Virus record (IMG/VR): IMGVR_UViG_3300013116_000108
Span: 62,001-126,000 of that record
DNA: 64,000 nucleotides
Strand: one strand, 5' to 3'
The notes under the pieces were generated by a model. That model worked only from the letters and a program-made list of their open reading frames with translations, had not been told where the DNA came from and ran no database searches. Made by a program: the position numbers and the translations under genes. Below, in pieces: positions 602 to 21,490 of the stretch (its first letter is position 1; every line of letters begins with the position of its first letter).

Positions 602-1060
602 TTACCACTTACGACAACTCCAGTACCTTGCTTTTGTCTTAGGTCCTGGATTATCACAGTTATGCCTTGCTCTAAATGATTTTCTTGCTTTAGGATTATT
701 CTTTCTAATTTTCATAGCCTTGCCCTTAACACTAGAACCGCCATGACCAAAGTTTACTTTTTTAACATTTCCTGTTTTAGGATCTTTAACATAAACTTTA
801 AATTTCTTAACGTCACCTTGCATTGGCTTGTTAAGTTTTACTTTACGACCTTGATACTCTGCTTCAAACGTATCACTTTCATCAATACTATAACCTAAGT
901 ATCCGTAGTCTTCAAAAAATTCGTTATCACTATCGTATGAATATTCAGTTTCGCTAACTTTTACACAGTTATTAACACGTTTACCTTTGTTTTTTCCTGT
1001 GCCGGGTTTAGTTCCTTGTTTTTTGTAACCATCCCAACAATCTATTTCACTTATTCTCAT
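602..1060 (-). CDS. Basic DUF6321-like phage protein, probable head/internal protein
   Basis: C-terminal YQGRKVKLNKP...KKFKVYVKDPKTGNVKKVNFG...RKSFRARHNC...KARYWSCRKW and N-terminal CWDGYKK...NNCVK modules typical of marine T4-like phages; starts MRISEI. Confidence 0.6.
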   Translation of the reverse strand: MRISEIDCWDGYKKQGTKPGTGKNKGKRVNNCVKVSETEYSYDSDNEFFEDYGYLGYSIDESDTFEAEYQGRKVKLNKPMQGDVKKFKVYVKDPKTGNVKKVNFGHGGSSVKGKAMKIRKNNPKARKSFRARHNCDNPGPKTKARYWSCRKW

Positions 1061-1064
1061 AAAT

Positions 1065-1397
1065 TTACCTTCTTTTGTTTAATGCTCGTTTGGCCATATC
1101 ATCTACTTTTTTATCAGCATCTATTTCTGGCTCTTCAGCGTCGATTGAATCATTGTCTATTTCATCAGGGGATTTTAGTATAATACTATCCTGATTTATG
1201 TCAGCGATAAGGTTTTGTAAATTAGGATTTTCGTCGTATGCTTTTTTAATAGCAGGATAACTTAAAGGTATTCCCATTTTTTGACCCATAGCAATAAAGG
1301 CCTTCATAGGCATTTCTTTGTTGTCACCTTCTATTTTGTTGGCTAGGAAAGCCATTAATGAAGATAATTTAGTAGGAGCAAACTCAACGAGTCGCAT
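1065..1397 (-). CDS. Hypothetical protein, probable head protein
   Basis: 110-aa ORF in a late operon; N-terminus MRLVEF. Confidence 0.55.
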   Translation of the reverse strand: MRLVEFAPTKLSSLMAFLANKIEGDNKEMPMKAFIAMGQKMGIPLSYPAIKKAYDENPNLQNLIADINQDSIILKSPDEIDNDSIDAEEPEIDADKKVDDMAKRALNKRR

Positions 1398-2464
1398 TAG
1401 CGTTCCTCTCTGTCTAACCCCGGTTCACCTTCAGTTCCGCCTTCTGGAGCATCTAAGTCCATAGCAGGAATTTCAGCATCTAAATCTAAATCGCCTGCTG
1501 GTTCCATAGCATCAGCACCATCTTCAGGTTCAGCACCTAAGTCAATACCTGTTTCTTCACCAGTTAACATTCTAGCGGCACTATCCATTCCACTTCTTGC
1601 TGATTCAACAGCACTTAAACAAGTTTCAATTGTTCCTTTAGCGGCATTTGAGAATCCATCTGCTTTATCTTGGCCCATTTCATCTCTAATAGCATCTACT
1701 AATGGTGGAAGGTTTTCATTTTGTAATTCGCCTAGTTGCTCTTGCATTTTTTGAAGTTGGTCAACCATATCTTTAGCGGCTAATACTAATTCTGCTGATT
1801 CCATTTCGCCTTCTTTTAAAATGCCTTCTTTAATTTTTAACATTCTTTTACTTCTTTTATCTAACTGTTGCATTATTCTAACGTTAGATAAACTTGCTGA
1901 CATAACGTTTTCTAGTAAGTCTAGTAATGGAACTAGACCTTCCATAAAGTTTGCCGGAACGCTTTTACCTGCTTTTGCCATCTTAAGGGCATTTATGGCT
2001 TTAGCATAGTTTTGGCCGCCAACAAGCAATCTAAGAGCCTGTTTAGCAGTCGCGTTATCACCGAATGCTTCTGTTACAGATTCTTTTGCTTTGCCTTTGT
2101 ATTCGTATCTAGGATCGCCTGCTTTATAACGTTTCCATGCCGGAGTATTTGCTTTTCTATCAGCATCTGTTACTTGCATTTTACGTCCTGGAATGTCGTG
2201 TTCTTTAACTGTAGGCAATTTTTGCTCAGTAAGCCATTTCTCTAATGCTTCTACTGTTAATACAGCATTTAAGTATTTTTGAGATGTCTTAGCATCTTGC
2301 CCACTTAATTTAATTTGTGTGATATCATTTCTAGTTGATTCTAATACTTCCAATGCTACTGCTGGAGTTAACTTGGAAAAATCAATTTCATGATTAAATG
2401 TTTTTTTAAGTTGTTTGTTCACTGCTGAACTAGTAACTCTTTTTTCAATTTCCATTAAATTCAT
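1397..2464 (-). CDS. Coiled-coil protein with acidic tail, probable prohead core/internal protein
   Basis: 355 aa; starts MNLMEI; helical; acidic C-terminus; TATAAATA upstream. Confidence 0.5.
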   Translation of the reverse strand: MNLMEIEKRVTSSAVNKQLKKTFNHEIDFSKLTPAVALEVLESTRNDITQIKLSGQDAKTSQKYLNAVLTVEALEKWLTEQKLPTVKEHDIPGRKMQVTDADRKANTPAWKRYKAGDPRYEYKGKAKESVTEAFGDNATAKQALRLLVGGQNYAKAINALKMAKAGKSVPANFMEGLVPLLDLLENVMSASLSNVRIMQQLDKRSKRMLKIKEGILKEGEMESAELVLAAKDMVDQLQKMQEQLGELQNENLPPLVDAIRDEMGQDKADGFSNAAKGTIETCLSAVESARSGMDSAARMLTGEETGIDLGAEPEDGADAMEPAGDLDLDAEIPAMDLDAPEGGTEGEPGLDREER

Positions 2465-2492
2465 AATTTTAGCCCTTTAATTTTATATAATG

Positions 2493-2500
2493 TATTTATA
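2493..2500 (-). promoter_or_regulatory. T4-type late promoter TATAAATA
   Basis: Exact T4 late consensus 29 nt upstream of the 2464 ATG. Confidence 0.6.
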
Positions 2501-2891
2501 CAATGTTCATTCGTTTTGATATTTCTTTTAATTCACGTAATGCTTTTTCCCACCCGGCCGCACTTAGATCTAGGCGTGTTTGATACAGTAAAATAGCATC
2601 ATTGTCGTGTCTTTTGTGTGCTTCTTTTAAATGATACTGGTGAAACATGGCATCATTCTTGTGTTTTCCTAAATTATCATCAATTCGTTTAATTTCTTCC
2701 GGATAACTATTGGTTTCGTATGCTACAGCATAGGATACAGCACCCAATCTAGAAGAAAATTCCATTTTTAAACCAGGTCTTTTATAACGCCACAGTCCGC
2801 CCTTAACTTGAACCACAATGGAATCGTTAATTCTAGTGAATTTCTCGTGTTTTGTTACAATAGGAAAATGTTTATTTTCTTTTTTTGCCAT
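2496..2891 (-). CDS. Hypothetical protein
   Basis: 131-aa ORF tiling with its neighbours. Confidence 0.55.
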   Translation of the reverse strand: MAKKENKHFPIVTKHEKFTRINDSIVVQVKGGLWRYKRPGLKMEFSSRLGAVSYAVAYETNSYPEEIKRIDDNLGKHKNDAMFHQYHLKEAHKRHDNDAILLYQTRLDLSAAGWEKALRELKEISKRMNIV

Positions 2892-3084
2892 ATATCACAT
2901 CTTCGTTGATTTTCTTACGCCATACTACGCTTTTACTTACCAAAAGGTTAATTGCGGCGAAGTGTTCTTGTTTCATCGACGATCGTGATATTTTATGTTC
3001 GGGTGATTCAGAAATAATACGGAGTACTTCTATCTCTGGTTTTGATAGCCACACTTTAACCATCGGTGAGAGTTTATACCACAT
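2872..3084 (-). CDS. Hypothetical protein (possible small helix-turn-helix)
   Basis: 70-aa ORF tiling with its neighbours. Confidence 0.45.
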   Translation of the reverse strand: MWYKLSPMVKVWLSKPEIEVLRIISESPEHKISRSSMKQEHFAAINLLVSKSVVWRKKINEDVIYGKKRK

Positions 3085-3088
3085 AAAA

Positions 3089-4243
3089 TTATTTTTTATT
3101 CTGTTTTAGCCAGTTTTGGGCTATTTTATTACGAGGCTCTGCTGTTAAAAACTTTCTTAAACTGCTTTCAACTTTTGTAAATGCTTCTGCTCTATTAGGA
3201 TCTTCCAAGCCGCCTGAATTGTCTATAACAATAAACCTATCTGCTCCAAATAGTTGTTGGAACTTCATTATATTTTCTTGTACTGCTCGCCACATTTGTT
3301 CTACTTTTAATATTGGCAATTTTCTAGGACGTTGTAAATTTCTTTCTTGTGCTACTGCTAATTTTGTATTAACAAATAACATCATTGTGCCATAACCTAA
3401 ATCAATCATTTCTTGTCTTATTTTTGCTGTCTTTTCAACATCACGACCAGTGCCGTCAATTACTACACCTAGTTTGCCGTCTAACCACCAGCCTTTTTGC
3501 TTCGCCATTAATTCTTTGCCTTGATCCCTAGTTGCTTGTCCGTCTGGGCTATAAATTTGTTCAGGGTCACCTACGTCCATGCCCTTTTTTGCCATTAAGT
3601 GTTCAAACATTTTATCTGAATCTATTACTTTTAATCCAAATTGTTTTAATACTTCTCGTGCTACATGAGATTTACCAGAACCAGGCCCGCCTGCCATAAA
3701 CACGGCTTTAAAAATATGTTTGTCTTGGGGGCCTTCTTCTATATTTAAACCAGTATCAACTAGTCTTTTTTTTTGAACAGTTTCAATCTGCTTATTGTAT
3801 TTGGCTCTAATTAAACTTGGCTTTAATCCAAGTTCTCTCGTCCTTATATCATCAACAGCGTTTTGGATTCTATATGCTATCTCTTTTGCTTTAGCATTGT
3901 CTGTTCCTTCAGCACTTTTAAATAACATTTCTACATACTCATCTATAGTAGCCAAGTATCCTGCTATATTGCCTTCGTTGTCTACTGAAACTTCTGATTC
4001 TATAGAAACTGTTTGTCCAGGTTTTGCTCCGCCTGGCTTTTTAAGTTTATTTTTATTATCGTGATTTAATTTAATAGATGTTTTACCACCACTTGAACTA
4101 ACATCAATGTTTGGATCTTTATCTAAATCCAAATTCATAGTTTGTCCTGGGCCTGTTTGTACAGATATCTTTTTACCATCCGGAGAAATTTTAGTAACTT
4201 TTCCTTGTTGTGGGTTTGCTTCTATTAATTTATACCAGCTCAT
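3089..4243 (-). CDS. Fusion protein with C-terminal P-loop kinase (zeta-toxin/AAA_33/PNK-like)
   Basis: KAVFMAGGPGSGKS Walker A, VIDSD, VVIDGTG, LAVAQERNLQRPR lid. Confidence 0.75.
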   Translation of the reverse strand: MSWYKLIEANPQQGKVTKISPDGKKISVQTGPGQTMNLDLDKDPNIDVSSSGGKTSIKLNHDNKNKLKKPGGAKPGQTVSIESEVSVDNEGNIAGYLATIDEYVEMLFKSAEGTDNAKAKEIAYRIQNAVDDIRTRELGLKPSLIRAKYNKQIETVQKKRLVDTGLNIEEGPQDKHIFKAVFMAGGPGSGKSHVAREVLKQFGLKVIDSDKMFEHLMAKKGMDVGDPEQIYSPDGQATRDQGKELMAKQKGWWLDGKLGVVIDGTGRDVEKTAKIRQEMIDLGYGTMMLFVNTKLAVAQERNLQRPRKLPILKVEQMWRAVQENIMKFQQLFGADRFIVIDNSGGLEDPNRAEAFTKVESSLRKFLTAEPRNKIAQNWLKQNKK

Positions 4244-4521
4244 TATCTCATTGCCTTATTCATTGATTGTACCCTGCGACTTGCTGGGTTAATACGTTTT
4301 GTTCTTCTAGATTTTAAAGCATTTCTTCTTTTATACTTTGCTTTAGTTATCATTAATTTAATACGTTTTTTAACGTTAGGTGCTTTATAACAAGCACCAG
4401 GTGTAGAGACAATTTTGCCTTTAAGCCTGCCTGTAGAACAGCGGTACTTACGGACAACTTTCTTGCCTGATCTGGCCCATGCCATTGTTGTTTCTAGTTG
4501 TGTAATTTCTTCGACTAGCAT
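4243..4521 (-). CDS. Small, very basic protein, probably virion-associated
   Basis: 92 aa, K/R-rich; starts MLVEEI; TAAATA-N5-ATG. Confidence 0.6.
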   Translation of the reverse strand: MLVEEITQLETTMAWARSGKKVVRKYRCSTGRLKGKIVSTPGACYKAPNVKKRIKLMITKAKYKRRNALKSRRTKRINPASRRVQSMNKAMR

Positions 4522-4526
4522 ACTTG

Positions 4527-4532
4527 TATTTA
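4527..4532 (-). promoter_or_regulatory. Late promoter TAAATA, 5 nt before ATG
   Basis: TAAATA-caagt-ATG (4521); no Shine-Dalgarno. Confidence 0.6.
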
Positions 4533-4542
4533 GTACGCGATA

Positions 4543-4806
4543 TTAATTAAGGATAATTAGTTGATAGGTCAAAAATGCCACTGCAGACACTAATGCTCCT
4601 ATTATACCAACTCCTATAGTCGTTACTTGTTTAGCACGACTTGTCTTATCTTTATACATAGCGTCACGTAACTCTACTAAAACTTCGTCCATTTTAGTCA
4701 TACGCTCGTCAATCGAGTCCAATTTCTCTTCCATTCTCTTATACCTTTCTGCACATAAATCAACGTGTGCCTCGAGGCTTTCTTTTTCAACGTCTAAAAC
4801 TGCCAT
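4543..4806 (-). CDS. Coiled-coil protein with one C-terminal TM helix (holin/XhlA-like architecture)
   Basis: EAHVDLCAERY heptads followed by IGVGIIGALVSAVAFLTYQLIIL. Confidence 0.5.
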   Translation of the reverse strand: MAVLDVEKESLEAHVDLCAERYKRMEEKLDSIDERMTKMDEVLVELRDAMYKDKTSRAKQVTTIGVGIIGALVSAVAFLTYQLIILN

Positions 4807-4844
4807 TGTGTCTTCTCACCTATGTATATCGTTAATTAGTGAGT

Positions 4845-4902
4845 TGCTACTATTACAATGCTATTGTGTTATGCCTATAAAGTTTGCCTATTGTGTTGCC
4901 TA
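4845..4902 (-). repeat. Five TAG(G)CA motifs with 12-14 nt period in the leader of the 4806 gene
   Basis: Plus-strand TGCTA at 4845 and 4859, TGCCTA at 4872, 4885 and 4897; CTATTGTGTT at 4861 and 4888. Confidence 0.7.
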
Positions 4903-4932
4903 CTAGTGTCAACTTGCTCTTCTAACCACAAG

Positions 4933-4938
4933 TATTTA
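4933..4938 (-). promoter_or_regulatory. Late promoter TAAATA
   Basis: Motif at the far end of the 135-nt intergenic leader. Confidence 0.5.
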
Positions 4939-4940
4939 TG

Positions 4941-5462
4941 CTAAACGTCTAAAGCATAACAGAGTGTATTTACTTTAACGCCTGTTGTAGCAAGGGTACT
5001 TGAAGTTAAATTTACTGTTTCTTGTAACCCTGTTAATACAGGTATAATATCTAACTGGTCTGTTAGTAATTTAACAGGATCATTGTCGCTACTAAAGATA
5101 TCAGGGGTTTCAAAGCCAAACTCCATAGTCCATACTTTGTGTTTTCCTTTGTAACCAAACCCTAACGAGCCTATACTAACAGTTTCACTAGTAGGCTCTT
5201 TTAACATAATAGGCTGAGCTCTAATAGAAATGCATTGTACAAGGGTTTCCCAGTTACGTTGCTCGTTCCTACTAATGTTCCATGTTTCTTGATTATTAAT
5301 AATATTTTTTAAATCGTCAACAAACGGCAAAGGTACATCTGCTCTAAATTCTGATATCATACCAGTAGCAGAAATATCTACTAATGTTTTAATTTGATAA
5401 TGGCTTCTTAGTGTTCCAAAATCATATCCTGTAGGTGAGCCGTGTGCTGTTCCTGATGTCAT
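4941..5462 (-). CDS. Hypothetical, probable structural protein
   Basis: 173-aa ORF in the late region. Confidence 0.5.
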   Translation of the reverse strand: MTSGTAHGSPTGYDFGTLRSHYQIKTLVDISATGMISEFRADVPLPFVDDLKNIINNQETWNISRNEQRNWETLVQCISIRAQPIMLKEPTSETVSIGSLGFGYKGKHKVWTMEFGFETPDIFSSDNDPVKLLTDQLDIIPVLTGLQETVNLTSSTLATTGVKVNTLCYALDV

Positions 5463-6547
5463 AATGTATACCTCTGTGAATTAAATGTTCCTTCGGCACT
5501 ACTAAACTCATAATCACTTCCGCATGTTCTTCCGCATGTAAATAACTTTGGATTACTGTCTGCCATTGTATTCTCCCAACTATCATTTAAATCTTTATTA
5601 TAAAAACTATGTTCTAATACTTGTTCTAAAGTGTACTTTTTTAATGAATTAAAATCTTTTCCGTATCTTTCTTGTATTTGTTTTATTTGCTTTTTTTGAA
5701 TATTATCCTCATCATCAAAATATGTAGGAGCACCTACCCAACAACAGGGCCATAAATTCATTTCAAAATCAATGTAAACAGTAGTATCTTTTTTATATTT
5801 ACATGTTATAGGAGTTTGATCGACGTAATTATTAAATGTTCCAAACTTATCTATAATTTGATCATACTTTGTTTTATTTTTATTTTCTTTACTGGAAATA
5901 ATGTTTTTATGTTTTGTTTCTATTTCCATTACTTTGTTAAAGTCACTTACTTTTACAAACCTACTAGTGTTTTTATAGTTAATACTTTTAAACCCCATTT
6001 CTTTTGCTAGTTCTTTTGCTTTTGCTACTTGGTGTATATTATGATCAAATATTAAATAATCCCAATTAGCGTTTCCACCTGCTTCAATAAATGCTGTAAT
6101 ATTTTCTTTTAATTTTTTCCAGTTACTATTAATACGATATAGATGGTTAGTATCTTCTAATCCATCTATACTAAAATCTACTCTATCAGTATCTCTATCT
6201 AAAATGTGTGCTATTCTAGTCCACCAAGCAGGAGATTGGGCACTACCATTTGTAACTACTGTAAGTCCTTGTACACCAGAATGTCTTATAAACTCTAAAC
6301 ATTCTAGAAAATTATTACTAGCAATACTATCACCGTAGTTGCCACACCAAAATATTCTTTTTATTTGTTTAGCAAAATCAGGTGTTAATATTCTTTTATA
6401 ATCATCAATAGTTAATTCACCCATTGGTAATATTGGGTTTTTATTACCGTTATTATCTACCCTAGCACATTGAGGACAAAGTAAATTACATTTACTAGTG
6501 TGTTCAATGTGCAATGTTGTGATTTCGCTAAGATTTAGATAATTCAT
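5459..6547 (-). CDS. Radical SAM enzyme with SPASM/twitch-like C-terminal domain
   Basis: CNLLCPQC (CxxxCxxC), WCGNYGD, VTNGS, FSIDG, WPCCW, CGRTC. Confidence 0.9.
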   Translation of the reverse strand: MNYLNLSEITTLHIEHTSKCNLLCPQCARVDNNGNKNPILPMGELTIDDYKRILTPDFAKQIKRIFWCGNYGDSIASNNFLECLEFIRHSGVQGLTVVTNGSAQSPAWWTRIAHILDRDTDRVDFSIDGLEDTNHLYRINSNWKKLKENITAFIEAGGNANWDYLIFDHNIHQVAKAKELAKEMGFKSINYKNTSRFVKVSDFNKVMEIETKHKNIISSKENKNKTKYDQIIDKFGTFNNYVDQTPITCKYKKDTTVYIDFEMNLWPCCWVGAPTYFDDEDNIQKKQIKQIQERYGKDFNSLKKYTLEQVLEHSFYNKDLNDSWENTMADSNPKLFTCGRTCGSDYEFSSAEGTFNSQRYTL

Positions 6548-6582
6548 TATATATGTACTTATCTAGTGTTGAACATGGGGTC

Positions 6583-6611
6583 AAAAAAATAGGCACTATA
6601 AAAGTGCCTAT
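6583..6611 (-). terminator. Rho-independent terminator
   Basis: Stem ataggcact/agtgcctat with T-run on the minus strand, after the 6642-6935 gene. Confidence 0.8.
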
Positions 6612-6641
6612 TTAAACTTCGGGAGGAAGTTTTAAGTTTTA

Positions 6642-6935
6642 TTAGTTAAAGTATGCAACTACTGCCGCCGTAACACCTGTTACGCCACCAAAGTTAGAAC
6701 CTGCCGCTGGAGCAACACCTTCTGATAGTACATGTACTACGTCTGAAGCGCCTGCGTTAAATCCACCTGTAGTGTCATCACCAATACCAACGATAGTCGC
6801 TGTTAATTGGATGTAAGCGATACATGAATCAAGCTCTGCTTGAGTTAAGTTTGATTTAGATAGGCTTGTAAGTGCTACCTCTTTACCAGCGAAGAATACA
6901 TCACCTGCGCCGTGAACTTTTGTTAAATCTGCCAT
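6642..6935 (-). CDS. Small Gly/Ala-rich probable structural (decoration-type) protein
   Basis: Own late promoter, strong GGAG RBS, own terminator, high-expression codon usage. Confidence 0.55.
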   Translation of the reverse strand: MADLTKVHGAGDVFFAGKEVALTSLSKSNLTQAELDSCIAYIQLTATIVGIGDDTTGGFNAGASDVVHVLSEGVAPAAGSNFGGVTGVTAAVVAYFN

Positions 6936-6989
6936 TTTAAGACTCCTTTTATTTTTGTGAACCCGTCAATAACTTTGCGGGCATACATA

Positions 6990-6995
6990 TATTTA
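6990..6995 (-). promoter_or_regulatory. Late promoter TAAATA followed by a 5' hairpin
   Basis: TAAATA, then CCCGCAA...TTGACGGG hairpin, then GGAG RBS. Confidence 0.55.
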
Positions 6996-7005
6996 GCCAA
7001 AACGG

Positions 7006-7659
7006 CTAATTTCGGATGCCTTTGATTTGATTTTTAATACGTGGATCACGTATTGCTTTATACAATGCCGCACCAGCAACAGCACCCCATACAAGTTTGT
7101 TTTTATGTAGTGGGCTTTTTGCTTGATCTATGCCTAAGTCTTTCTTTCGCATTGTTTTATGATAGCCTGGCATAAAATCACTGCCTTTAGCAGTATGATT
7201 TAAAGCAAAACCTAGTCTAGTAGCCGCTACTTTACGCTCTGATGGTAACATTCTAGGCCAGTCAGCAATAACACGCCTCATTTGATTTGTTGCTCCGCTT
7301 CTAACACCTAGTCCACGTTGTAACATAATTAAATTACGCCTGTCTGCTTGTGTATCTAATCTACCATTAGCAATACCTTGTAAATAACCTCTTACTTGAT
7401 TTTGAGGTGTTTTATCTACACTTGCTATTAAGTTATGTAAGTCTGTAGCACCAGGGCGTACACTATTAAATGGTAAACTTAACGTTTTTCTAGCATAGGC
7501 TTGAGCCGCCTTTGGATTCTCATATTTCATTACTTGTAAACCTAGTAAGTGAGAATATAAAGTATCTGCTAATTGTCCTTGACTAGTTGCCGCTATCCTT
7601 GTTGGATTTTTAAACATTCTTGCTTCTGCTAATTCTTCTTTTATAAATTCAAAAGCCAT
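7006..7659 (-). CDS. Hypothetical, probable head/internal protein
   Basis: Likely start MAFEFIKEELAEA at 7659 (TAATG overlap with the upstream stop). Confidence 0.55.
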   Translation of the reverse strand: MAFEFIKEELAEARMFKNPTRIAATSQGQLADTLYSHLLGLQVMKYENPKAAQAYARKTLSLPFNSVRPGATDLHNLIASVDKTPQNQVRGYLQGIANGRLDTQADRRNLIMLQRGLGVRSGATNQMRRVIADWPRMLPSERKVAATRLGFALNHTAKGSDFMPGYHKTMRKKDLGIDQAKSPLHKNKLVWGAVAGAALYKAIRDPRIKNQIKGIRN

Positions 7660-8921
7660 TACTTGCTCCAACTCTTTGCTTGATTAAAGTTTGCTTTGTT
7701 AAACTCTAATCTATCGTTGAGTTTAACTGCTCCACCTTCCATTCCAAATGCTACAAAACCTTCTGGATTTGTAACTTTATAACCATCATCTGTTTTTAAG
7801 AATGTACCAACACTTTGTTCAATACGTTCTAGTTTCTTTAATAGTTTTAATTTAAGTTGTATAACTTGTTTGTATACTGCCATTACTATTAATATTGTAT
7901 TTAAATTGTCTTCTACAAATTTTTCTGTTGCTAATACTTTTTCTAATCTTTTTTGTGCGGCCGGTCCTTCTGGACCTGTTTTAAGTTTTGAAATTTCGCC
8001 TTCCATTTTTTCTTTAAAATATTCTATAAATTCTTTTACAAACTGTATTGGTTCACCAACACTAGTGCCTGCTGTAATTCTTTTATTAATAAAAGGTTTT
8101 AACCAAGTAGCAAGAGCAGGATCTTCTAAAAATTTATTAAATGTTTCTGGTGTTGCTTTCTTTAATGTAATTTGTGCCTGTCCTAAACCGTTTGAAACTA
8201 CTTTATCTTCTTGGCTAGTAAGTGTTGCTTTACCGCCTACATCTTTATAATAAGCATCATCAACCCAAACACTACTTGTAGGCTTTAAATTACCAACACT
8301 AGCACCAAACGAGGCTTTCATATCTGCTAAAGTTTCGCCTGTGTATGTAGTATGGAATACTACACCTAGTTGTGCTGATTTAATTTTTCTTCCAATGTCT
8401 GAATCTACTGGAACTGAATATGTAATAGTATTAGGTGTAAATGTATGTACTTCCTCACCACTTATTGTAGTAGTTTCTAAATCTTCTGCTGTAAACATCA
8501 TATCGCCTTGTAAAACGCCTTGTATACCTAATTTACTTAACTCTGAGAGTGCTATTTTAAGTTTTTTATTAAGGCCTTCTCCTGGATACCACTTGTCTAC
8601 GTCTGCTGATGTTTTTGCCGCTTTATTTTCTGTTTTACCAAATACTGCTTTAGTGCCTACAAAGAACTTTCCGTCTACTGGATCTGTTCCGCAGAATATC
8701 GCAGGAGCACCGTCCCACTTAACTGTGACTTTACTTTGTCCTTCGCCACCCACGTTCAACATCATTCTTAAAGAATTAATATACTTCAATGCTGTAATGG
8801 CACCCTGATATCCATCATTTAAAATTAAATCTTCTAGATGCTCTAAGTGTAAATTTTTATCAGTGGCTTCTGTAATTGTTTGCCATTTACCGCGTGGTCT
8901 CATTACTTCTGTTATTAACAT
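7659..8921 (-). CDS. DUF6267-like protein with ATP-dependent ligase/nucleotidyltransferase-like motifs
   Basis: KNLHLEHLED; VTVKWDGAP (KxDG); VLQGDMMF; NPEGFV; AVKL.DRLEF. Confidence 0.65.
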   Translation of the reverse strand: MLITEVMRPRGKWQTITEATDKNLHLEHLEDLILNDGYQGAITALKYINSLRMMLNVGGEGQSKVTVKWDGAPAIFCGTDPVDGKFFVGTKAVFGKTENKAAKTSADVDKWYPGEGLNKKLKIALSELSKLGIQGVLQGDMMFTAEDLETTTISGEEVHTFTPNTITYSVPVDSDIGRKIKSAQLGVVFHTTYTGETLADMKASFGASVGNLKPTSSVWVDDAYYKDVGGKATLTSQEDKVVSNGLGQAQITLKKATPETFNKFLEDPALATWLKPFINKRITAGTSVGEPIQFVKEFIEYFKEKMEGEISKLKTGPEGPAAQKRLEKVLATEKFVEDNLNTILIVMAVYKQVIQLKLKLLKKLERIEQSVGTFLKTDDGYKVTNPEGFVAFGMEGGAVKLNDRLEFNKANFNQAKSWSK

Positions 8922-9527
8922 TTATTTTCCTAATTCTGCGGCTATTTCTTTTTTCGCAATTCTACCAGTTTTTGTGCCAACCCATTGGGCACCTTTCCAT
9001 TCGTACTCATTGCCGTCTGATGCTGTTTTCCTAGCACCTACTTGATTTTGAGCCGCTGTTGGATTTTCATCGCCTGCCGGTTTTGGCATAGGCTCACGTA
9101 TTTCTTTTCTTATTTTTTCAGGTAAATGTTTTTCAATTTGGTCTCTAAACAGTTCTGCCTCTTTTTCACTTTTAGGCTTTAATAATATTGCTGTTACAAT
9201 TCTAAATATAGCGTTAGCACCTTTAGTTCCTTGTGTGAAATTAATAGCACCGTTGTTCATTGCTTTTTTGTGATCTATATTAACTGAACTAGTTCCGTAA
9301 AATTTATCGATCCAAGCATTTAGTAATCCTTGAGGATTTACTTTAGCAAATTCTTGGTTCTTTTGAACAGCATGGCTCCAAAAAGCATAATGCTTTTCTA
9401 CCATTGATATTACTTCTCCAATTTGTCCTCCTTTACCAGAAAATCCTCCCGACAACTTTGAAGATTTTTTTTGTGCTTTTTGCCACTTATTAACGTATTT
9501 TTCTACGTCAATTTCACTAATTATCAT
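8922..9527 (-). CDS. Hypothetical, probable head/internal protein
   Basis: Starts MIISEI; short C-terminal module DGNEYEWKGAQWV. Confidence 0.5.
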   Translation of the reverse strand: MIISEIDVEKYVNKWQKAQKKSSKLSGGFSGKGGQIGEVISMVEKHYAFWSHAVQKNQEFAKVNPQGLLNAWIDKFYGTSSVNIDHKKAMNNGAINFTQGTKGANAIFRIVTAILLKPKSEKEAELFRDQIEKHLPEKIRKEIREPMPKPAGDENPTAAQNQVGARKTASDGNEYEWKGAQWVGTKTGRIAKKEIAAELGK

Positions 9528-9765
9528 TTTTTAACTTCCTAATACCTCTAGTAAACTTAATTGGTTCTTGTTTCTTGATTGCCGCTATAAATCTTTTTTC
9601 TAAATCTTGTGATACTTCTTCAGAAAAGTTTTCTTTAATCATTTTAATTAGATTAATTGATGATTGTATCAGGTGAGTTGCTCTACTTTCCACCACATGT
9701 TTTCGGTCTTTGTCGATCGCTATCGCATCTAGCTCTTCTAATAATGATCTAGTCTTATGTTTCAT
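9517..9765 (-). CDS. Hypothetical protein
   Basis: 82 aa; GGAG RBS; TAAATA at 9791-9800. Confidence 0.6.
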   Translation of the reverse strand: MKHKTRSLLEELDAIAIDKDRKHVVESRATHLIQSSINLIKMIKENFSEEVSQDLEKRFIAAIKKQEPIKFTRGIRKLKNDN

Positions 9766-9876
9766 TAAGAGTCTCCCTGTATAGTATAGTTATTTATTTA
9801 ATTTCGGATACTTGTTGAAAGATCTTAAAATTGTTTTTGCTCAATATTGGTTAAATACAAGTATTAAGGAGACCAT

Positions 9877-10605
9877 ATGAACAGAAGTAATCATTTTGCC
9901 AACCTTTCAGGATTGGTATATAGAGATTTTAATGCTGGCTTAACGGCTAAATTAAAAAAACTAGGTTATAGTAAAGTCAAATACGTTGATGTAAACGGTG
10001 CTCAAGCAATGATTTTAACTAATAATAAAGAACAAGTAATTGCTTTTAGGGGAACAGAGCCTAAGCAATTTAGTGATATTGCGGCAGACTTAAAAGCATG
10101 GAAAAGCAAGTCTAAAACAGAGGGCAAAGTACATGACGGGTTTTATGACGAAGTTAATAAAGTCTGGTCAAAAATAACACCGTTATTAAGCAAATCTAAA
10201 CCGTTGTTTATAACTGGACACAGTTTAGGTGGTGCTATGGCTACTATTGCCGCAAGTAGACTAGAAGATCAAACAGAATGCTTATATACGTTTGGATCTC
10301 CAAGAGTAGGTAATAAAAAATTTGTAGAAGGCTTAAAAGTAAAACATTATAGATGGCGTAATAACAATGATTTAGTTCCTACTGTTCCTATGGCTATTAT
10401 GGGATTTAAACATCACGGAACTTATTGCTACATTAACCATTACGGAAACATAAGAAATGGTTTGAGTAAATGGCAGAGATTTAAAGATTGGTGTAGAGGG
10501 CATTGGGCCGCTATTAAAAATCTTGAATTATTTGACGGAATAAGAGATCACGGGATACCCAACTACGTTAAGCATACGGCAAAAAATAAAGAAAGTAGTA
10601 ATTAA
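9877..10605 (+). CDS. Class 3 lipase (alpha/beta hydrolase)
   Basis: VIAFRGTE, VHDGF, ITGHSLGGA nucleophile elbow, YTFGSPRVG, NNNDLVP, terminal DH; AAGGAG RBS; TAAATA at 9852. Confidence 0.9.
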   Translation: MNRSNHFANLSGLVYRDFNAGLTAKLKKLGYSKVKYVDVNGAQAMILTNNKEQVIAFRGTEPKQFSDIAADLKAWKSKSKTEGKVHDGFYDEVNKVWSKITPLLSKSKPLFITGHSLGGAMATIAASRLEDQTECLYTFGSPRVGNKKFVEGLKVKHYRWRNNNDLVPTVPMAIMGFKHHGTYCYINHYGNIRNGLSKWQRFKDWCRGHWAAIKNLELFDGIRDHGIPNYVKHTAKNKESSN

Positions 10606-11403: not shown

Positions 11404-11775
11404 GTGAATAAATTTGAGAAGTTAAGAGAGAAGTATCCATTTCTTAGCCATGTGAGATATTCTGGCAATGAGTATATCGGGATAGTTCAAAACTTTGACA
11501 AGCATTGTTTAAGCATTTACGATATTGATAGACTAAAAACACTAGAAGAACGAAAATTATTTTTACAAATGGGAGATGTTTGGTGGAACGAATCAAATCG
11601 AATGATCCCTATTAACATCTTTCTTAAAAAAGACTTTCAATATTTTAAAGTTTGCTTACAGACTTTTATTGCTAAGGATTGTAGTATAATTGCCGGGCCT
11701 CAAGTTAGTTTAAAAAATATTAGTGAAAAGCGTGTTAAGAAAAAGAGTATACAATTAGTTAAAAAGCCTACCTAG
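11404..11775 (+). CDS. Hypothetical protein
   Basis: GGAG RBS with GTG start; YPFLS..EYIGIVQN..WWNESNRMIPINIFL. Confidence 0.6.
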   Translation: MNKFEKLREKYPFLSHVRYSGNEYIGIVQNFDKHCLSIYDIDRLKTLEERKLFLQMGDVWWNESNRMIPINIFLKKDFQYFKVCLQTFIAKDCSIIAGPQVSLKNISEKRVKKKSIQLVKKPT

Positions 11776-12577
11776 GCATCTCTTCATTTAGAAATCGCCA
11801 GCAGTCTTGGTTCATATAATCTAGGCGGTTGTTATCAACTAAATATTTTCTCATTGCTTTAAGATTATTTTCTGCCCAATCAATATAACGGGTTTTATCT
11901 CTAAATTTTAAATCATCTACACTTATCCTAGAATTAGGATATTTTTGGTTATAGTAATTCCTAAAAATGTTTCTTTCTGGGTGCCAAGTTAGTTCTGGAG
12001 ATTCTGTATACCATTCATGTGATATTTCAGCAATATCCTTAGGACAGTTACGGTCTTTGAAAAACATACATACAGACCAATGTATTGTCCAATACGGATT
12101 ATCATAATCTAACCATTTCCAAACTGGCTCTCTAAAAACATTATAATCGTAATGTGTTGGAAACCATTTAGCATTTTCAACAAATACAGTATTAATAGTT
12201 TCGTATTCCCCTTCACCCGGTTGCTCTCTAATAACTTTATCTACATCAGGATTTCCAGTTTCTTGTTTCCATTTATGTTTGGGATCTTGTTCCTTAAGGA
12301 AACGTTTAATTTCCATTTCATTTTTAAAATTAACCCTACATTCTTCAGTCCACTCACCTGCCCTGCTAGGAAGTCGCTGTGCTTCTTCAAATAGTATAGG
12401 ATGTCCAGGAAAAGAGTTATGCGACGAATATCTATTTCTATTAGGAGCCATTTTAGAAAATGAAAAGTCTTGTGATAAATCTTGGGAATTTAAAACGGCT
12501 GTTATGTATTCTCCACCTGCTCCAGGGGGATATACTAACACTCTTTGATGATCTTTAAACCAATCTCTAGGAGTCAC
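11768..12577 (-). CDS. Hypothetical protein, possibly sulfotransferase-like
   Basis: [13 protein letters not shown]-terminal loop; likely GTG start at 12577 (the ORF-track start overlaps the ferredoxin). Confidence 0.4.
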
Positions 12578-12917
12578 CGGGTTCTTCCTTAAAGAACTCC
12601 ATTTTGCCATTTGGGTAATTTTTAGGATCGAATTTTTCATGCTCAGGCATTGGGTCTCCGTTCTCAGTTATTACTGGCCATCCATGTTCGTTAGCATACT
12701 TCCAATTAAAATCTACCCATTTAGCACCATGTTCTGTAGTATCAGAGTGTATCGCATCAACTGGACATTCTGGTTCACATACTCCACAATCAATACATTC
12801 ATCTGGATTAATAACCAGTGTGTTTATTCCTTCATAAAAACAATCAACTGGGCATACCTCCACACAGTCTTTATGTTTACAATTAATACATCCGTCATCT
12901 ACTATATAGGTACTCAT
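12567..12917 (-). CDS. fdxA: 7Fe (3Fe-4S/4Fe-4S) ferredoxin
   Basis: [21 protein letters not shown] and [16 protein letters not shown], FdI-type. Confidence 0.9.
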
Positions 12918-13942
12918 ATTATTTCCTTATTCATACAATTTTCACATATTTGTGATTCTTTATTTTTCCAAACATTGTTTAAATGTTTAGTAAAAAACTT
13001 GTGAGATAAAATCTCTATTAAACTAAATTTATTAATATTATTAAAATCCTGTGGGAATTTTTTTCTAATAGACAGCATTGACCATTCGTTGTCATAAAAC
13101 GCATTATTGGCATTATCTGAAATGAAACAACACGGCCATATCCTGCCTTTAACATCGACTTGTAATGCCAAGTCTTTTAGCCAAGGACAATTAAATTCAT
13201 GTTCAATACTTTTATCTGCCCAAAAATGAACTCCTTCTTTATCAGGATAAAAATCTTCTTGAAGTGATTGTAACTCTTTATAAACTTCATTACTAGGTGC
13301 GGTAATAACTACTTCAGGCATACCTTTATATTCTTTAGCAAATATTTCTTTATCGTAACTTTCACTTATTGTAAAATACCTAAATCCTAAACTACGAGCA
13401 AACTCTTTTGCTTTTTGTACTTGATGTTTATTATGGTCAAATATAATCATACGCCAATGTGCTGTGCCGCCATACGATATAAATTCTTTAGCATTACTTA
13501 TTATCTTTTTAAAGTCAGTTCCTCGCCTATGAATGTAATTAGTATCCTCTAATCCATCAATTGAAAAAACAACTTCGTGCTTTTTAAATTTTTGTAAAAC
13601 AGTTGCTAACTCTCGCCAGTGTTCTAAACTTCTTAACCCCCCGTTAGTATGTATAGAAACCATATCAGTAATATTACCAGTGCTGGCTACTTTGTCAAGC
13701 ATATTAACAATATTAGGATTCATCATAGGGTCACCAAAATTTCCATTTAATGTTAATGCTGATATACTACTATCTTCAAATAACTTTGTCCATGTTTCCA
13801 TACTCATATGCTCTAAGCCAATATGAGGATTAACTTCTCCACCATCAATATTCCTAGAACATCCTGGACAAAACGAATTACAATAAGTTGTCGTTTCTAC
13901 CTGTAAATGTTTAATTACGTTGATGTAAGTTGTACTTGACAT
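12914..13942 (-). CDS. Radical SAM enzyme with SPASM/twitch-like domain
   Basis: [39 protein letters not shown]; paralog of 5459-6547. Confidence 0.9.
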
Positions 13943-21412: not shown

Positions 21413-21490
21413 TATAAATACTGTATCATTATAACACACAACAATCGCTGTGTCAAGTATTTACATATGGATAATATGCCCAGATAAATA
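21413..21490 (+). promoter_or_regulatory. Two late promoters: TATAAATA (21413-21420) and TAAATA (21485-21490)
   Basis: Motifs upstream of the plus-strand operon starting at 21512. Confidence 0.55.
21428..21456 (-). promoter_or_regulatory. sigma70 promoter (consensus, extended -10)
   Basis: TTGACA, 17 nt, TGt-TATAAT. Confidence 0.85.

Follow-up and report, generated by a model that had tools for sequence, protein, structure and literature searches.

The T4-like phages of marine cyanobacteria, SAR11, and methylophilales are among the most abundant viruses of the ocean. In phage T4 itself, the polynucleotide kinase Pnk and the RNA ligase Rnl1 repair tRNA that has been cut by the host anticodon nuclease PrrC. 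T4 also possesses internal head proteins, which carry a leader that acts as capsid-targeting sequence, are cleaved according to the rule L/I-X-E, and are ejected (PMC9026906). Among marine relatives, NMNAT-like proteins have repeatedly been found in cyanophage virions (PMC9602691, PMC10665884), and mass spectrometry of purified S-CREM2 virions revealed the cytidylyltransferase ORF154 (PMC10665884). The present analysis concerns a DNA stretch of 64,000 nucleotides (the window; bases 62001-126000 of a single viral contig of 204,100 bp, IMG/VR record IMGVR_UViG_3300013116_000108), the positions of which are used as coordinates throughout, unless contig positions are mentioned. Its minus strand encodes, between positions 602 and 9765, a protein of the family DUF6267 (7659-8921) and a P-loop kinase (3089-4243), which an earlier sequence-only reading had proposed to be an injected pair for the repair or modification of nucleic acids. 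What emerges is a probable ligase-fold family that is often loaded into the head, next to a separately loaded kinase of the polynucleotide kinase (PNK)/zeta fold group. As a whole, the region 602-9765 is best explained, with a probability of about 0.5, as a late cassette of head-internal cargo in a T4-like marine myovirus, with these two enzymes in it.

The DUF6267 protein, which counts 420 amino acids (aa), is a predicted covalent nucleotidyltransferase with an RNA-ligase fold, with K68 as the predicted nucleotidyl-accepting lysine. Its match to the Pfam family DUF6267 (PF19782) had an E value of 1.2e-106 (357.7 bits, the cut-off being 27), covered model positions 1-376, and was confirmed on the genome; the domain begins at residue 23. 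Both open reading frames (ORFs; 420 and 384 aa) and all motifs quoted in the sequence-only reading were found again in their places. On the minus strand, the series comprises motif I KWDG (residues 68-71; 8709-8720), in which K68, D70, and G71 are invariant; a candidate motif III QGDMMF (residues 138-143; 8493-8510); motif IV EGFV (residues 387-390; 7752-7763); and motif V VKLNDR (residues 399-404; 7710-7727). Conservation was assessed in an alignment of 111 DUF6267 homologues, which are 33-74% identical to the window protein. Invariant across this alignment were K68, D70, G71, G78, P81, Y168, G186, and K400, and Q138, G139, D140, E387, G388, V390, D403, and R404 were conserved in at least 90% of the homologues. 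In addition, a motif HxEHxED is nearly invariant at the start of the mature DUF6267 domain. A composite ligase pattern (KxDG, an acidic residue, EGxx, and K, at ligase-like spacing) occurred in one of the 225 ORFs counted in the 204-kb genome fragment. The motif series is hence not a chance occurrence, as the composite pattern is unique among these ORFs and its residues are conserved in the 111 homologues. Motifs IV and V are 13 residues apart, and the C-terminus of the protein lies 20 residues past motif V.

An AlphaFold2 model of the DUF6267 protein, built on a 111-sequence alignment, had a predicted local distance difference test score (pLDDT) of 91.4 and a predicted template modelling score (pTM) of 0.88. 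In an exhaustive structure comparison with 48,161 representative chains of the Protein Data Bank (PDB), ranks 1 to 8 were all occupied by RNA ligases, with 172-202 aligned residues each, namely NgrRnl (Z 8.6), REL1 (Z 8.2), Trl1 (Z 8.0 and 7.8), T4 Rnl2 (Z 7.8 and 7.7), T4 Rnl1 (Z 7.6), and an archaeal Rnl (Z 6.8). More than a dozen DNA ligases came next (Z 5.6-6.6), and a second structure pass added the vaccinia and yeast capping enzymes, these as well as snurportin ranking below the RNA ligases. This order agrees with the ligase/capping-enzyme fold that had been read from the motifs of 7659-8921. The match to NgrRnl spans the catalytic domain of the latter (residues 143-339), which contains K170, E227, E312, and K326. 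Similarly, a search of the AlphaFold DB clusters yielded a match to an 'RNA ligase domain-containing protein' (E value of 8.7e-6). According to the secondary structure of the model, a helical insert of ~130 aa (residues 236-364; 7830-8216, minus strand) lies between motifs IIIa and IV; its residues 260-337 bear a weak likeness to helical domains of the YqeY/GatB type (Z ~6). The case for the ligase fold rests jointly on the uniform family at the top ranks, the invariant motif residues, and the order and spacing of the motifs. Taken together, these make it very probable that the DUF6267 protein has a ligase-type nucleotidyltransferase fold, with a motif correspondence set by order and spacing.

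No OB-fold domain with motif VI follows the nucleotidyltransferase domain in the model, the only additional module being helical. Lacking an OB domain, the DUF6267 protein belongs, as a family member, to neither the DNA ligases nor the capping enzymes, and Pfam did not assign it to PF01068 or PF01653. The known RNA ligase families Rnl1 (PF09511) and Rnl2 (PF09414) matched neither the DUF6267 protein nor anything else in the genome fragment. Furthermore, PADLOC and NCBIfam gave no match for this protein, and a literature search found no mention of DUF6267 or of its Syn9 member gp183. As modelled, the architecture is RNA-ligase-like, yet unlike that of any described RNA ligase family. DUF6267 is probably a new family of ligase-fold enzymes, often delivered by the virion.

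Delivery by the virion is suggested by the N-termini. The predicted propeptide of the DUF6267 protein comprises residues 1-18 (8868-8921, minus strand), with the sites MLITE↓V and, at residues 14-19, QTITE↓A; the pLDDT is below 50 over residues 9-18. The kinase starts with the leader MSWYKLIE↓A (residues 1-8; 4220-4243, minus strand), and the view that both proteins are tagged like head proteins was sustained by statistics. A looser leader signal, defined as [LI]xE in the first 12 residues, was present in 10 of the 14 minus-strand ORFs of 602-9765, against 22 of the 210 other ORFs (Fisher p of 6e-7). The strict start M-x-[LIVM]-x-E-[IVLF] was found in nine of the 225 ORFs, seven of these nine being located inside 602-9527. 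Across families, 80 of the 111 homologues of DUF6267 and 26 of the 33 of the kinase carried the looser signal, which none of 36 ligases of the T4-Rnl2 type had. The leader consensus of the DUF6267 family, M-x-S-F-K-Q-F/Y-L-x-E↓A/S-K, is close over ~10 residues to the capsid-targeting sequence of T4 IPII and IPIII, which start with MKTYQEFIAE↓A; similarly, the QTITE↓A stretch of the window protein matches STITE↓A of T4 IPI, which starts with MKTFKEF...STITE↓A. The kinase of phage Melnitz starts with MKTFAELQE↓G, and ORF154 of S-CREM2, the cytidylyltransferase found in virions, with MKNFSSFLTE↓A, a leader of the same type. A gp21-type protease is encoded in the same genome (Peptidase_S77; E value of 3.6e-26; contig positions 146102-146734), within a portal-core-protease-scaffold-capsid module. 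Not all DUF6267 proteins carry the leader: the short cyanophage forms Syn9 gp183 and the S-CREM2 homologue (~300-320 aa) lack it and start directly at HxEHPED. The form of S-SCSM1 has a reduced helical insert, without model positions 207-311. The leader-bearing forms are, judging by these N-termini, likely to be packaged.

Starts of the L/I-x-E kind were also seen in the head module itself (contig positions 144746-148177), namely in the scaffold protein (MTNMLE↓V), the major capsid protein (MSDTLIE↓S), and a 77-aa core protein (MKLFE↓L). The protease, too, has an L/I-x-E near its N-terminus (…NLVIE↓S).

The layout of the cassette points to late expression. The late promoter of T4 is TATAAATA, the core of which is matched by ATAAATA. 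In the genome examined here, no 7-mer was more enriched than ATAAATA in the 60 nucleotides (nt) ahead of ORFs (found for 23 genes, with 1.2 expected; ~20-fold). Most of these copies lie 18-40 nt ahead of structural genes, among them those for the portal and the tail tube and fibre-sized ORFs. It is this motif, proven to be enriched upstream of ORFs, that was taken as the relaxed late-promoter core NATAAATA and the window copies of which were tallied against expectation. Overall, ATAAATA was rarer in the window than expected, with 13 copies versus 44.8 ± 7.1; those on the minus strand start at 2493, 4933, 9791, 11387, 33541, 38367, 42920, 48545, 52156, and 55281, and those on the plus strand at 21414, 21484, and 58663. 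Scarce overall but enriched ahead of ORFs, the motif behaves as would a late-promoter core avoided at other positions. A scan for the strict T4 late promoter yielded three sites only.

Three units of tagged genes can be recognized, all on the minus strand. The first one lies behind the late-promoter-like copy of ATAAATA at 9791-9797 (AATAAATA), 25 nt upstream of its first gene, and its ORFs 9517-9765, 8922-9527, 7659-8921, and 7006-7659 overlap or abut. It opens with an 82-aa ORF (9517-9765) that starts with MKHKTRSLLEE and is kept ahead of DUF6267 in relatives, followed by a 201-aa ORF (8922-9527) with a head-type leader MIISEI... and without family match. Downstream of the DUF6267 gene, a 217-aa ORF (7006-7659) starts with MAFEFIKEELAEAR, which resembles the T4 IPII leader (QEFIAEAR). 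After a gap of 70 nt, a 97-aa ORF (6642-6935) with a strong ribosome-binding site forms the last gene of this unit. A hairpin with a 9-bp stem and a 5-nt loop, followed by a T-run (6583-6611), is likely the terminator; it was read directly and was absent from a scan for consensus terminators. The second unit contains, behind the copy at 4933-4939 (CATAAATA; ~125 nt upstream), the ORFs 4543-4806 and 4243-4521, the kinase gene, and two small ORFs; the 92-aa product of 4243-4521, directly upstream of the kinase gene, has a head-type leader MLVEEI.... The third unit follows 28 nt downstream of a late-promoter-like TATAAATA at 2493-2499 and encompasses the ORFs 1397-2464 (leader MNLMEI; match to a PHROG 'virion structural protein'), 1065-1397 (leader MRLVEF), and 602-1060 (leader MRISEI). 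A radical-SAM gene and its partner (4941-6547), both without head-type leader, separate the first and second units. Look-ups of three other tagged proteins in the Atlas returned viral hypotheticals or nothing. From the motif, we infer that the tagged block 602-9765 is expressed late.

The kinase protein (3089-4243, minus strand) counts 384 aa and consists of four parts. Its leader is followed by a beta-rich N-terminal domain (residues 10-83; 3995-4213), a helical linker (residues 93-163), and the P-loop kinase domain (residues 172-384; 3092-3730). The latter domain, modelled with a pLDDT of ~85-95, displays the P-loop GGPGSGKS (residues 185-192; 3668-3691) and an IDSD motif (3614-3625), of which D210 is the candidate catalytic aspartate, 19 residues past the P-loop lysine. 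Among 33 kinase homologues, K191, D210, DGTG, R301, R305, R307, and E214 were invariant, and S192 nearly so. A typical homologue of ~230 residues consists of leader and kinase, to which the lineage of the window adds the N-terminal region of ~160 residues (beta-rich domain and helical linker). The beta-rich domain, without family match, is kept only in close relatives (KVTK(I/V)SPDGKK...); the linker is variable, acidic or helical, with Cys-rich inserts in some relatives. Of the Pfam families, Zeta_toxin matched best (49.8 bits, with a cut-off of 22.3), followed by AAA_33 (48.5 bits, with a cut-off of 27), and a polynucleotide-kinase PHROG matched at 4e-7. None of the NCBIfam cut-offs was reached, the only matches being sub-threshold ones to nucleotide or shikimate kinases. 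The exhaustive aligner ranked the uncharacterized kinase 2rhm (Z 15.2), archaeal PSTK (Z 15.1), and Pnkp of Clostridium thermocellum (CthPnkp; Z 14.5) highest, followed by T4 Pnk (Z 12.9; 21-22% identity), zeta toxin (Z 12.7), Kti12 (Z 12.6), and Pnkp1 (Z 12.4). Nucleoside monophosphate (NMP) kinases (Z of at most 11.6) and AvrRxo1 (Z 11.5) ranked lower. With PSTK, CthPnkp, T4 Pnk, zeta toxin, Kti12, and Pnkp1 all above the NMP kinases, the earlier designation 'PNK-like' is, by the modelled fold, fair for the fold clade (polynucleotide kinase/PSTK/zeta). The absence of a visible 3'-phosphatase noted before was also confirmed: Pfam recognized no such domain in the kinase or the DUF6267 protein, and the PNK3P profile had no match in the 204-kb fragment, which is an estimated 56% complete. 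Likewise, a 2',3'-cyclic phosphodiesterase was found neither in the two proteins nor elsewhere in the genome fragment.

Whether the two enzymes form a pair can be judged from their distribution. A distance of 3.4 kb, which includes the radical-SAM pair, separates their genes, and the two belong to different late-promoter units. Searches with tblastn retrieved DUF6267 from 467 phage records, 453 of them of cyanophages, and the kinase from nine phage records (Melnitz, HTVC008M, Atu_ph07, RsoM2USA), with no kinase homologue in any cyanophage record. In Melnitz-3, the kinase gene is located at 65.9 kb, adjoining baseplate genes, and the DUF6267 gene at 13.3 kb. In a metagenomic contig of 244 kb, the kinase gene comes after that of a PAAR protein and again adjoins baseplate genes, and no DUF6267 gene occurs within 10 kb. 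Two more distant relatives have kept the helicase, the 82-aa ORF, the tagged ORF, and DUF6267, without a kinase within 10 kb of the latter. Having both genes in one cassette, as in the window, is common only to close relatives. In Atu_ph07 and RsoM2USA, the neighbourhoods of the kinase encode hypothetical proteins throughout, and Pfam found no second domain in the 778-aa kinase protein of Atu_ph07. A 483-aa neighbour of the Melnitz kinase was considered as a possible DUF6267 protein and rejected, as it shows no BLASTP similarity. Judging by gene order, the conserved unit is a cassette of tagged cargo downstream of the gp41 helicase gene, with DUF6267 as its constant member. The proposal of a functional pair like T4 Pnk and Rnl1 was therefore not upheld, given the separate units and the lack of the kinase in more than 450 DUF6267-bearing cyanophage records. 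The DUF6267 protein and the kinase are separate cargo items and not an obligate or fixed repair pair. Without conserved pairing or an end-healing phosphatase, RNA repair is one possibility among several and not the indicated function.

A recurrent companion of DUF6267 is a cytidylyltransferase. In Syn9, the DUF6267 gene gp183 is followed by the cytidylyltransferase-like gp184, which has the leader MKKFSAFLSE↓A. In S-PM2 (A0A0M6VVW4; TM 0.87) and many uncultured phages, DUF6267 is fused to a cytidylyltransferase-like (NMNAT-like) domain, and the AlphaFold DB and Atlas clusters contain further fusions of this kind. The fusion protein P0201 carries PF19782, PF01467, and DUF5824, and a fusion of DUF6267 to Cu/Zn superoxide dismutase was also present in the Atlas clusters. 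Such fusions may signal a shared pathway; it is at least as likely that they represent polyprotein cargo sharing one leader. The cytidylyltransferase genes of the window were considered as candidates for the virion type and rejected, since none has a leader and they resemble genes for sugar-nucleotide enzymes.

In the mechanism that we infer from the sequence, which concerns packaging, cleavage, and ejection as well as ligase chemistry and substrate, the cargo proteins would be counterparts of IPI, IPII, IPIII, and Alt of T4. The N-terminal leader would target each of them to the prohead core, the gp21-type protease would remove this leader after the L/I-x-E site, and the mature cargo would stay in the capsid, from which it would be ejected with the DNA. 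Once in the cell, K68 of the DUF6267 protein would take AMP from ATP and this AMP would pass to a 5'-phosphate end; attack of a 3'-OH on the adenylylated end would then seal the break. The kinase could phosphorylate 5'-OH ends, in view of its invariant candidate catalytic D210 and lid arginines. The host cell would contain both enzymes as soon as infection starts, and such a presence would suit the sealing or healing of broken nucleic acid. The nucleic acid acted on by either enzyme could be phage DNA, RNA, or tRNA.

Several results weigh against this explanation. Concerning the fold, Foldseek, which the sequence-only reading had called for as a check against Rnl1, Rnl2, and capping enzymes, gave E values of at least 0.1 against the PDB and the Swiss-Prot models, hence no significant match, although ligases recur in its lists. 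The helical insert at residues 236-364, which splits the catalytic domain, is a likely reason. Moreover, structural Z scores of ~8-9 are only middling by the calibration of the aligner itself, hidden Markov model (HMM) and phmmer searches of the PDB sequences gave no ligase and only low-complexity helical matches, and hhalign of the family with T4 Rnl2, taken as a single sequence or as a narrow profile of 36 sequences with at least 55% identity, returned a probability of ~0.1. Concerning the kinase, Foldseek mixed adenylate kinases (ranked first), polynucleotide kinases, and zeta toxins, and, from the modelled fold, a polynucleotide substrate cannot be told from a small-molecule one. Position 213 (D+3) is F or Y across the 33 homologues, the D+3 residue of T4 Pnk being R38, an arginine that binds the acceptor nucleotide. 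Concerning expression and packaging, the assignment of late promoters rests on the motif, and DUF6267 homologues were not among the detected proteins of the S-CREM2 and S-SCSM1 virion proteomes. As these short homologues (that of S-CREM2 being leaderless) were not detected in these virion proteomes, the function of DUF6267 does not depend on packaging; at the same time, the non-detection of the leaderless S-CREM2 homologue fits a role of the leader as packaging signal.

Among the rival explanations, the main one holds that DUF6267 is the 'missing' DNA ligase of the Kyanoviridae, taking the place of T4 gp30 without being its orthologue and closing nicks in replication, recombination, or repair; the long forms would then have gained their head leader in certain lineages, as a means of loading this ligase in advance. 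This is a real but doubtful possibility. Indeed, the complete records of Syn9, S-CREM2, S-SCSM1, and Melnitz-3 contain DUF6267 and no ligase of PF01068 or PF01653 (T4 as control, 9e-35), and neither of these DNA ligase families was found in the 204-kb fragment, so that this phage family may have its strand-joining enzyme in DUF6267. Homologues of gp30 were retrieved from 2645 phage records, with Synechococcus outside the ten commonest host names, and DUF6267 has its 453 cyanophage records among 467. Furthermore, the Syn9 DUF6267 gene is located between those for DNA polymerase, UvsX, and gp41 helicase and that for primase, and the window gene between a helicase and an exonuclease gene. However, all DNA ligases known to us have an OB domain, which DUF6267 lacks, and RNA ligases outscored DNA ligases structurally (Z 7.6-8.8 versus at most 6.6). 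A position behind a late-promoter-like motif among head-tagged genes, as is the case here, is unexpected for a replication enzyme, and a host ligase could serve replication. The likeness to RNA ligases, T4 Rnl1 and Rnl2 included, speaks for another rival, the injected RNA-repair pair of the sequence-only reading, in which 5'-OH RNA ends would be phosphorylated by the kinase and tRNA cleaved by host anticodon nucleases would be rejoined by the ligase, as T4 Pnk and Rnl1 do. The closeness of the kinase to tRNA and polynucleotide kinases, the head leader on both proteins, and the weak YqeY/GatB likeness of the helical insert are in line with it. This explanation is nevertheless unlikely, as neither protein nor the fragment revealed a 2',3'-cyclic phosphodiesterase or a 3'-phosphatase, the two genes belong to different units and are unlinked in most relatives, the ligase-fold gene is present in more than 450 cyanophage records, in none of which tblastn detects the kinase, and the window contains no tRNA genes.

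The companionship with cytidylyltransferases raises the question of whether DUF6267 joins strands at all. It could be a nucleotidyltransferase that works with the NMNAT-like cytidylyltransferases on an NAD-related or other acceptor, with the kinase acting on a small molecule or nucleotide, such as NAD (as AvrRxo1 does), UDP-N-acetylglucosamine (UNAG, as zeta toxin does), or deoxynucleoside monophosphates (dNMPs). The repeated fusion or adjacency to cytidylyltransferase-like domains (S-PM2, P0201, Syn9 gp183-gp184), Zeta_toxin as best Pfam match of the kinase, and its Z score of 11.5 with AvrRxo1 agree with this. Yet, the fusions may be polyprotein cargo sharing a leader, the more so as one with Cu/Zn superoxide dismutase exists too; the full ligase motif set is conserved; the cytidylyltransferase genes of the window are leaderless and resemble those for sugar-nucleotide enzymes; and the kinase stays below the NCBIfam cut-off for every named small-molecule kinase. 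A non-ligase function is thus improbable. Finally, the N-terminal motifs might not be targeting or cleavage signals, and the proteins might be normal late or middle products that stay in the infected cell instead of being packaged. The L/I-x-E motif is short, 14% of the ORFs of the genome carry such a start, and the DUF6267 homologues escaped detection in two cyanophage virion proteomes. Against this stand the strong clustering (p of 6e-7), the family-wide leader close to the T4 capsid-targeting consensus, its absence from the 36 T4-Rnl2-type ligases, and the detection in virions of a different enzyme with the same leader; moreover, the undetected S-CREM2 homologue is leaderless, as is that of Syn9. 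These points render the absence of packaging the least probable of the explanations, and the late cassette of head-internal cargo is retained as the preferred one.

The phage that harbours this cassette is a T4-like myovirus, as its contig encodes a gp41-type helicase, a large terminase, a tail sheath, and a tail tube. The module with portal, core proteins, gp21-type protease, scaffold, and major capsid protein sits just outside the window. The contig is AT-rich (~34% G+C), and ARAGORN found no tRNA genes in the window. A megablast search of 50,697 phage records with the region as query returned nothing, hence no close relative at the DNA level; the nearest relatives at the protein level are Kyanoviridae, namely cyanomyoviruses, Pelagibacter phage HTVC008M, and Methylophilales phage Melnitz. 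The completeness of the 204-kb contig was estimated by CheckV at 56%. Relatives with near-identical cargo genes sit on contigs of 291-360 kb, and given both figures the phage may belong to the jumbo T4-like viruses. Bordering the cargo cassette, on the opposite strand, a class-3 lipase gene was found (Lipase_3; E value of 6e-25; 9877-10605, plus strand), which occupies the same place in one relative. Apart from the radical-SAM gene at 5459-6547, the window contains a second one at 12914-13942, with a SPASM domain, both on the minus strand. Each of them is adjoined by an ORF matching no family, the pairs spanning 4941-6547 and 11768-13942 (both minus strand), and the second one also adjoins a 2x[4Fe-4S] ferredoxin gene (12567-12917). 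Such genes are unusual in a phage.

The significance of a ligase fold in DUF6267 follows from the size of the family, with at least 8000 clusters at 90% identity in a word-indexed search and 2489 at 50% in an exhaustive search, found almost only in the marine T4-like phages of cyanobacteria, SAR11, and methylophilales. The combination of a ligase fold with an intact motif set gives DUF6267 a testable chemistry and makes it a candidate for the ligase that these phages appear to lack. Tentatively, DUF6267 could even be a new polynucleotide ligase family in which an internal helical module replaces the OB or terminal domain, and thus the long-missing ligase of the Kyanoviridae, preloaded into the capsid and injected in many lineages. 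If true, such a capsid-preloaded ligase family would provide the first virion-delivered strand-joining enzyme. More generally, a T4-type leader was found on unrelated enzymes, namely a ligase-fold protein, a P-loop kinase, and an NMNAT-like transferase, which suggests that the enzymes injected by T4-like marine phages are of varied kinds. As the leader is widespread on unrelated enzymes, it could serve as a sequence signature for injected proteins in metagenomes.

Compared with described systems, the kinase of the window shares with T4 Pnk and Pnkp the P-loop kinase fold (Z 12.9 for T4 Pnk and 14.5 for CthPnkp), the P-loop GxxGSGKS, an aspartate ~19 residues past the P-loop lysine, and an arginine-rich lid RNxxRxR. 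Unlike T4 Pnk, it has no fused 3'-phosphatase, an aromatic residue at D+3, Zeta_toxin/AAA_33 as best Pfam matches, and a leader with an N-terminal region of ~160 residues. With the virion cytidylyltransferases S-CREM2 ORF154, S-SCSM1 ORF91, and Syn9 gp184, which were detected in purified virions (PMC10665884, PMC9602691) and are often adjacent or fused to DUF6267, the window cargo has the leader type in common, as read in ORF154 and gp184. The cytidylyltransferases differ in belonging to the HxGH nucleotidyltransferase superfamily and in acting on small molecules; unlike S-CREM2 and Syn9, the fragment of the window phage has no leader-bearing copy.

With the RNA ligases Naegleria NgrRnl/Rnl5, T4 Rnl2, Trypanosoma brucei REL1/Rnl2, T4 Rnl1, and fungal Trl1, the DUF6267 protein shares, in the model, the same fold (Z 7.6-8.8 over 166-202 residues) and the same motif order, with the invariant lysine of KxDG, EG(F)V, and the lysine of motif V. 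The spacing between motifs IV and V is 14 in NgrRnl (E312 to K326, residues named in the PDB entry titles) versus 13 in DUF6267, and the RNA ligases and DUF6267 alike have an accessory helical module instead of an OB domain. Unlike these ligases, DUF6267 is without detectable sequence or profile similarity to them, places its helical module inside the catalytic domain (between IIIa and IV) and not N- or C-terminally, has an extra, nearly invariant HxEHxED at the mature N-terminus, and carries a predicted cleavable head-targeting leader, a feature that we know of in no other ligase. It is this leader that connects the cassette with the T4 proteins IPI, IPII, IPIII, and Alt, with which it shares a leader of ~8-19 residues ending in L/I-x-E, a gp21-type protease in the genome, and gene clustering behind late-promoter-like motifs. 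The mature parts are unrelated: the cargo of T4 consists of small basic proteins or an ADP-ribosyltransferase, whereas the cargo that the window phage would package includes a ligase-fold enzyme and a P-loop kinase.

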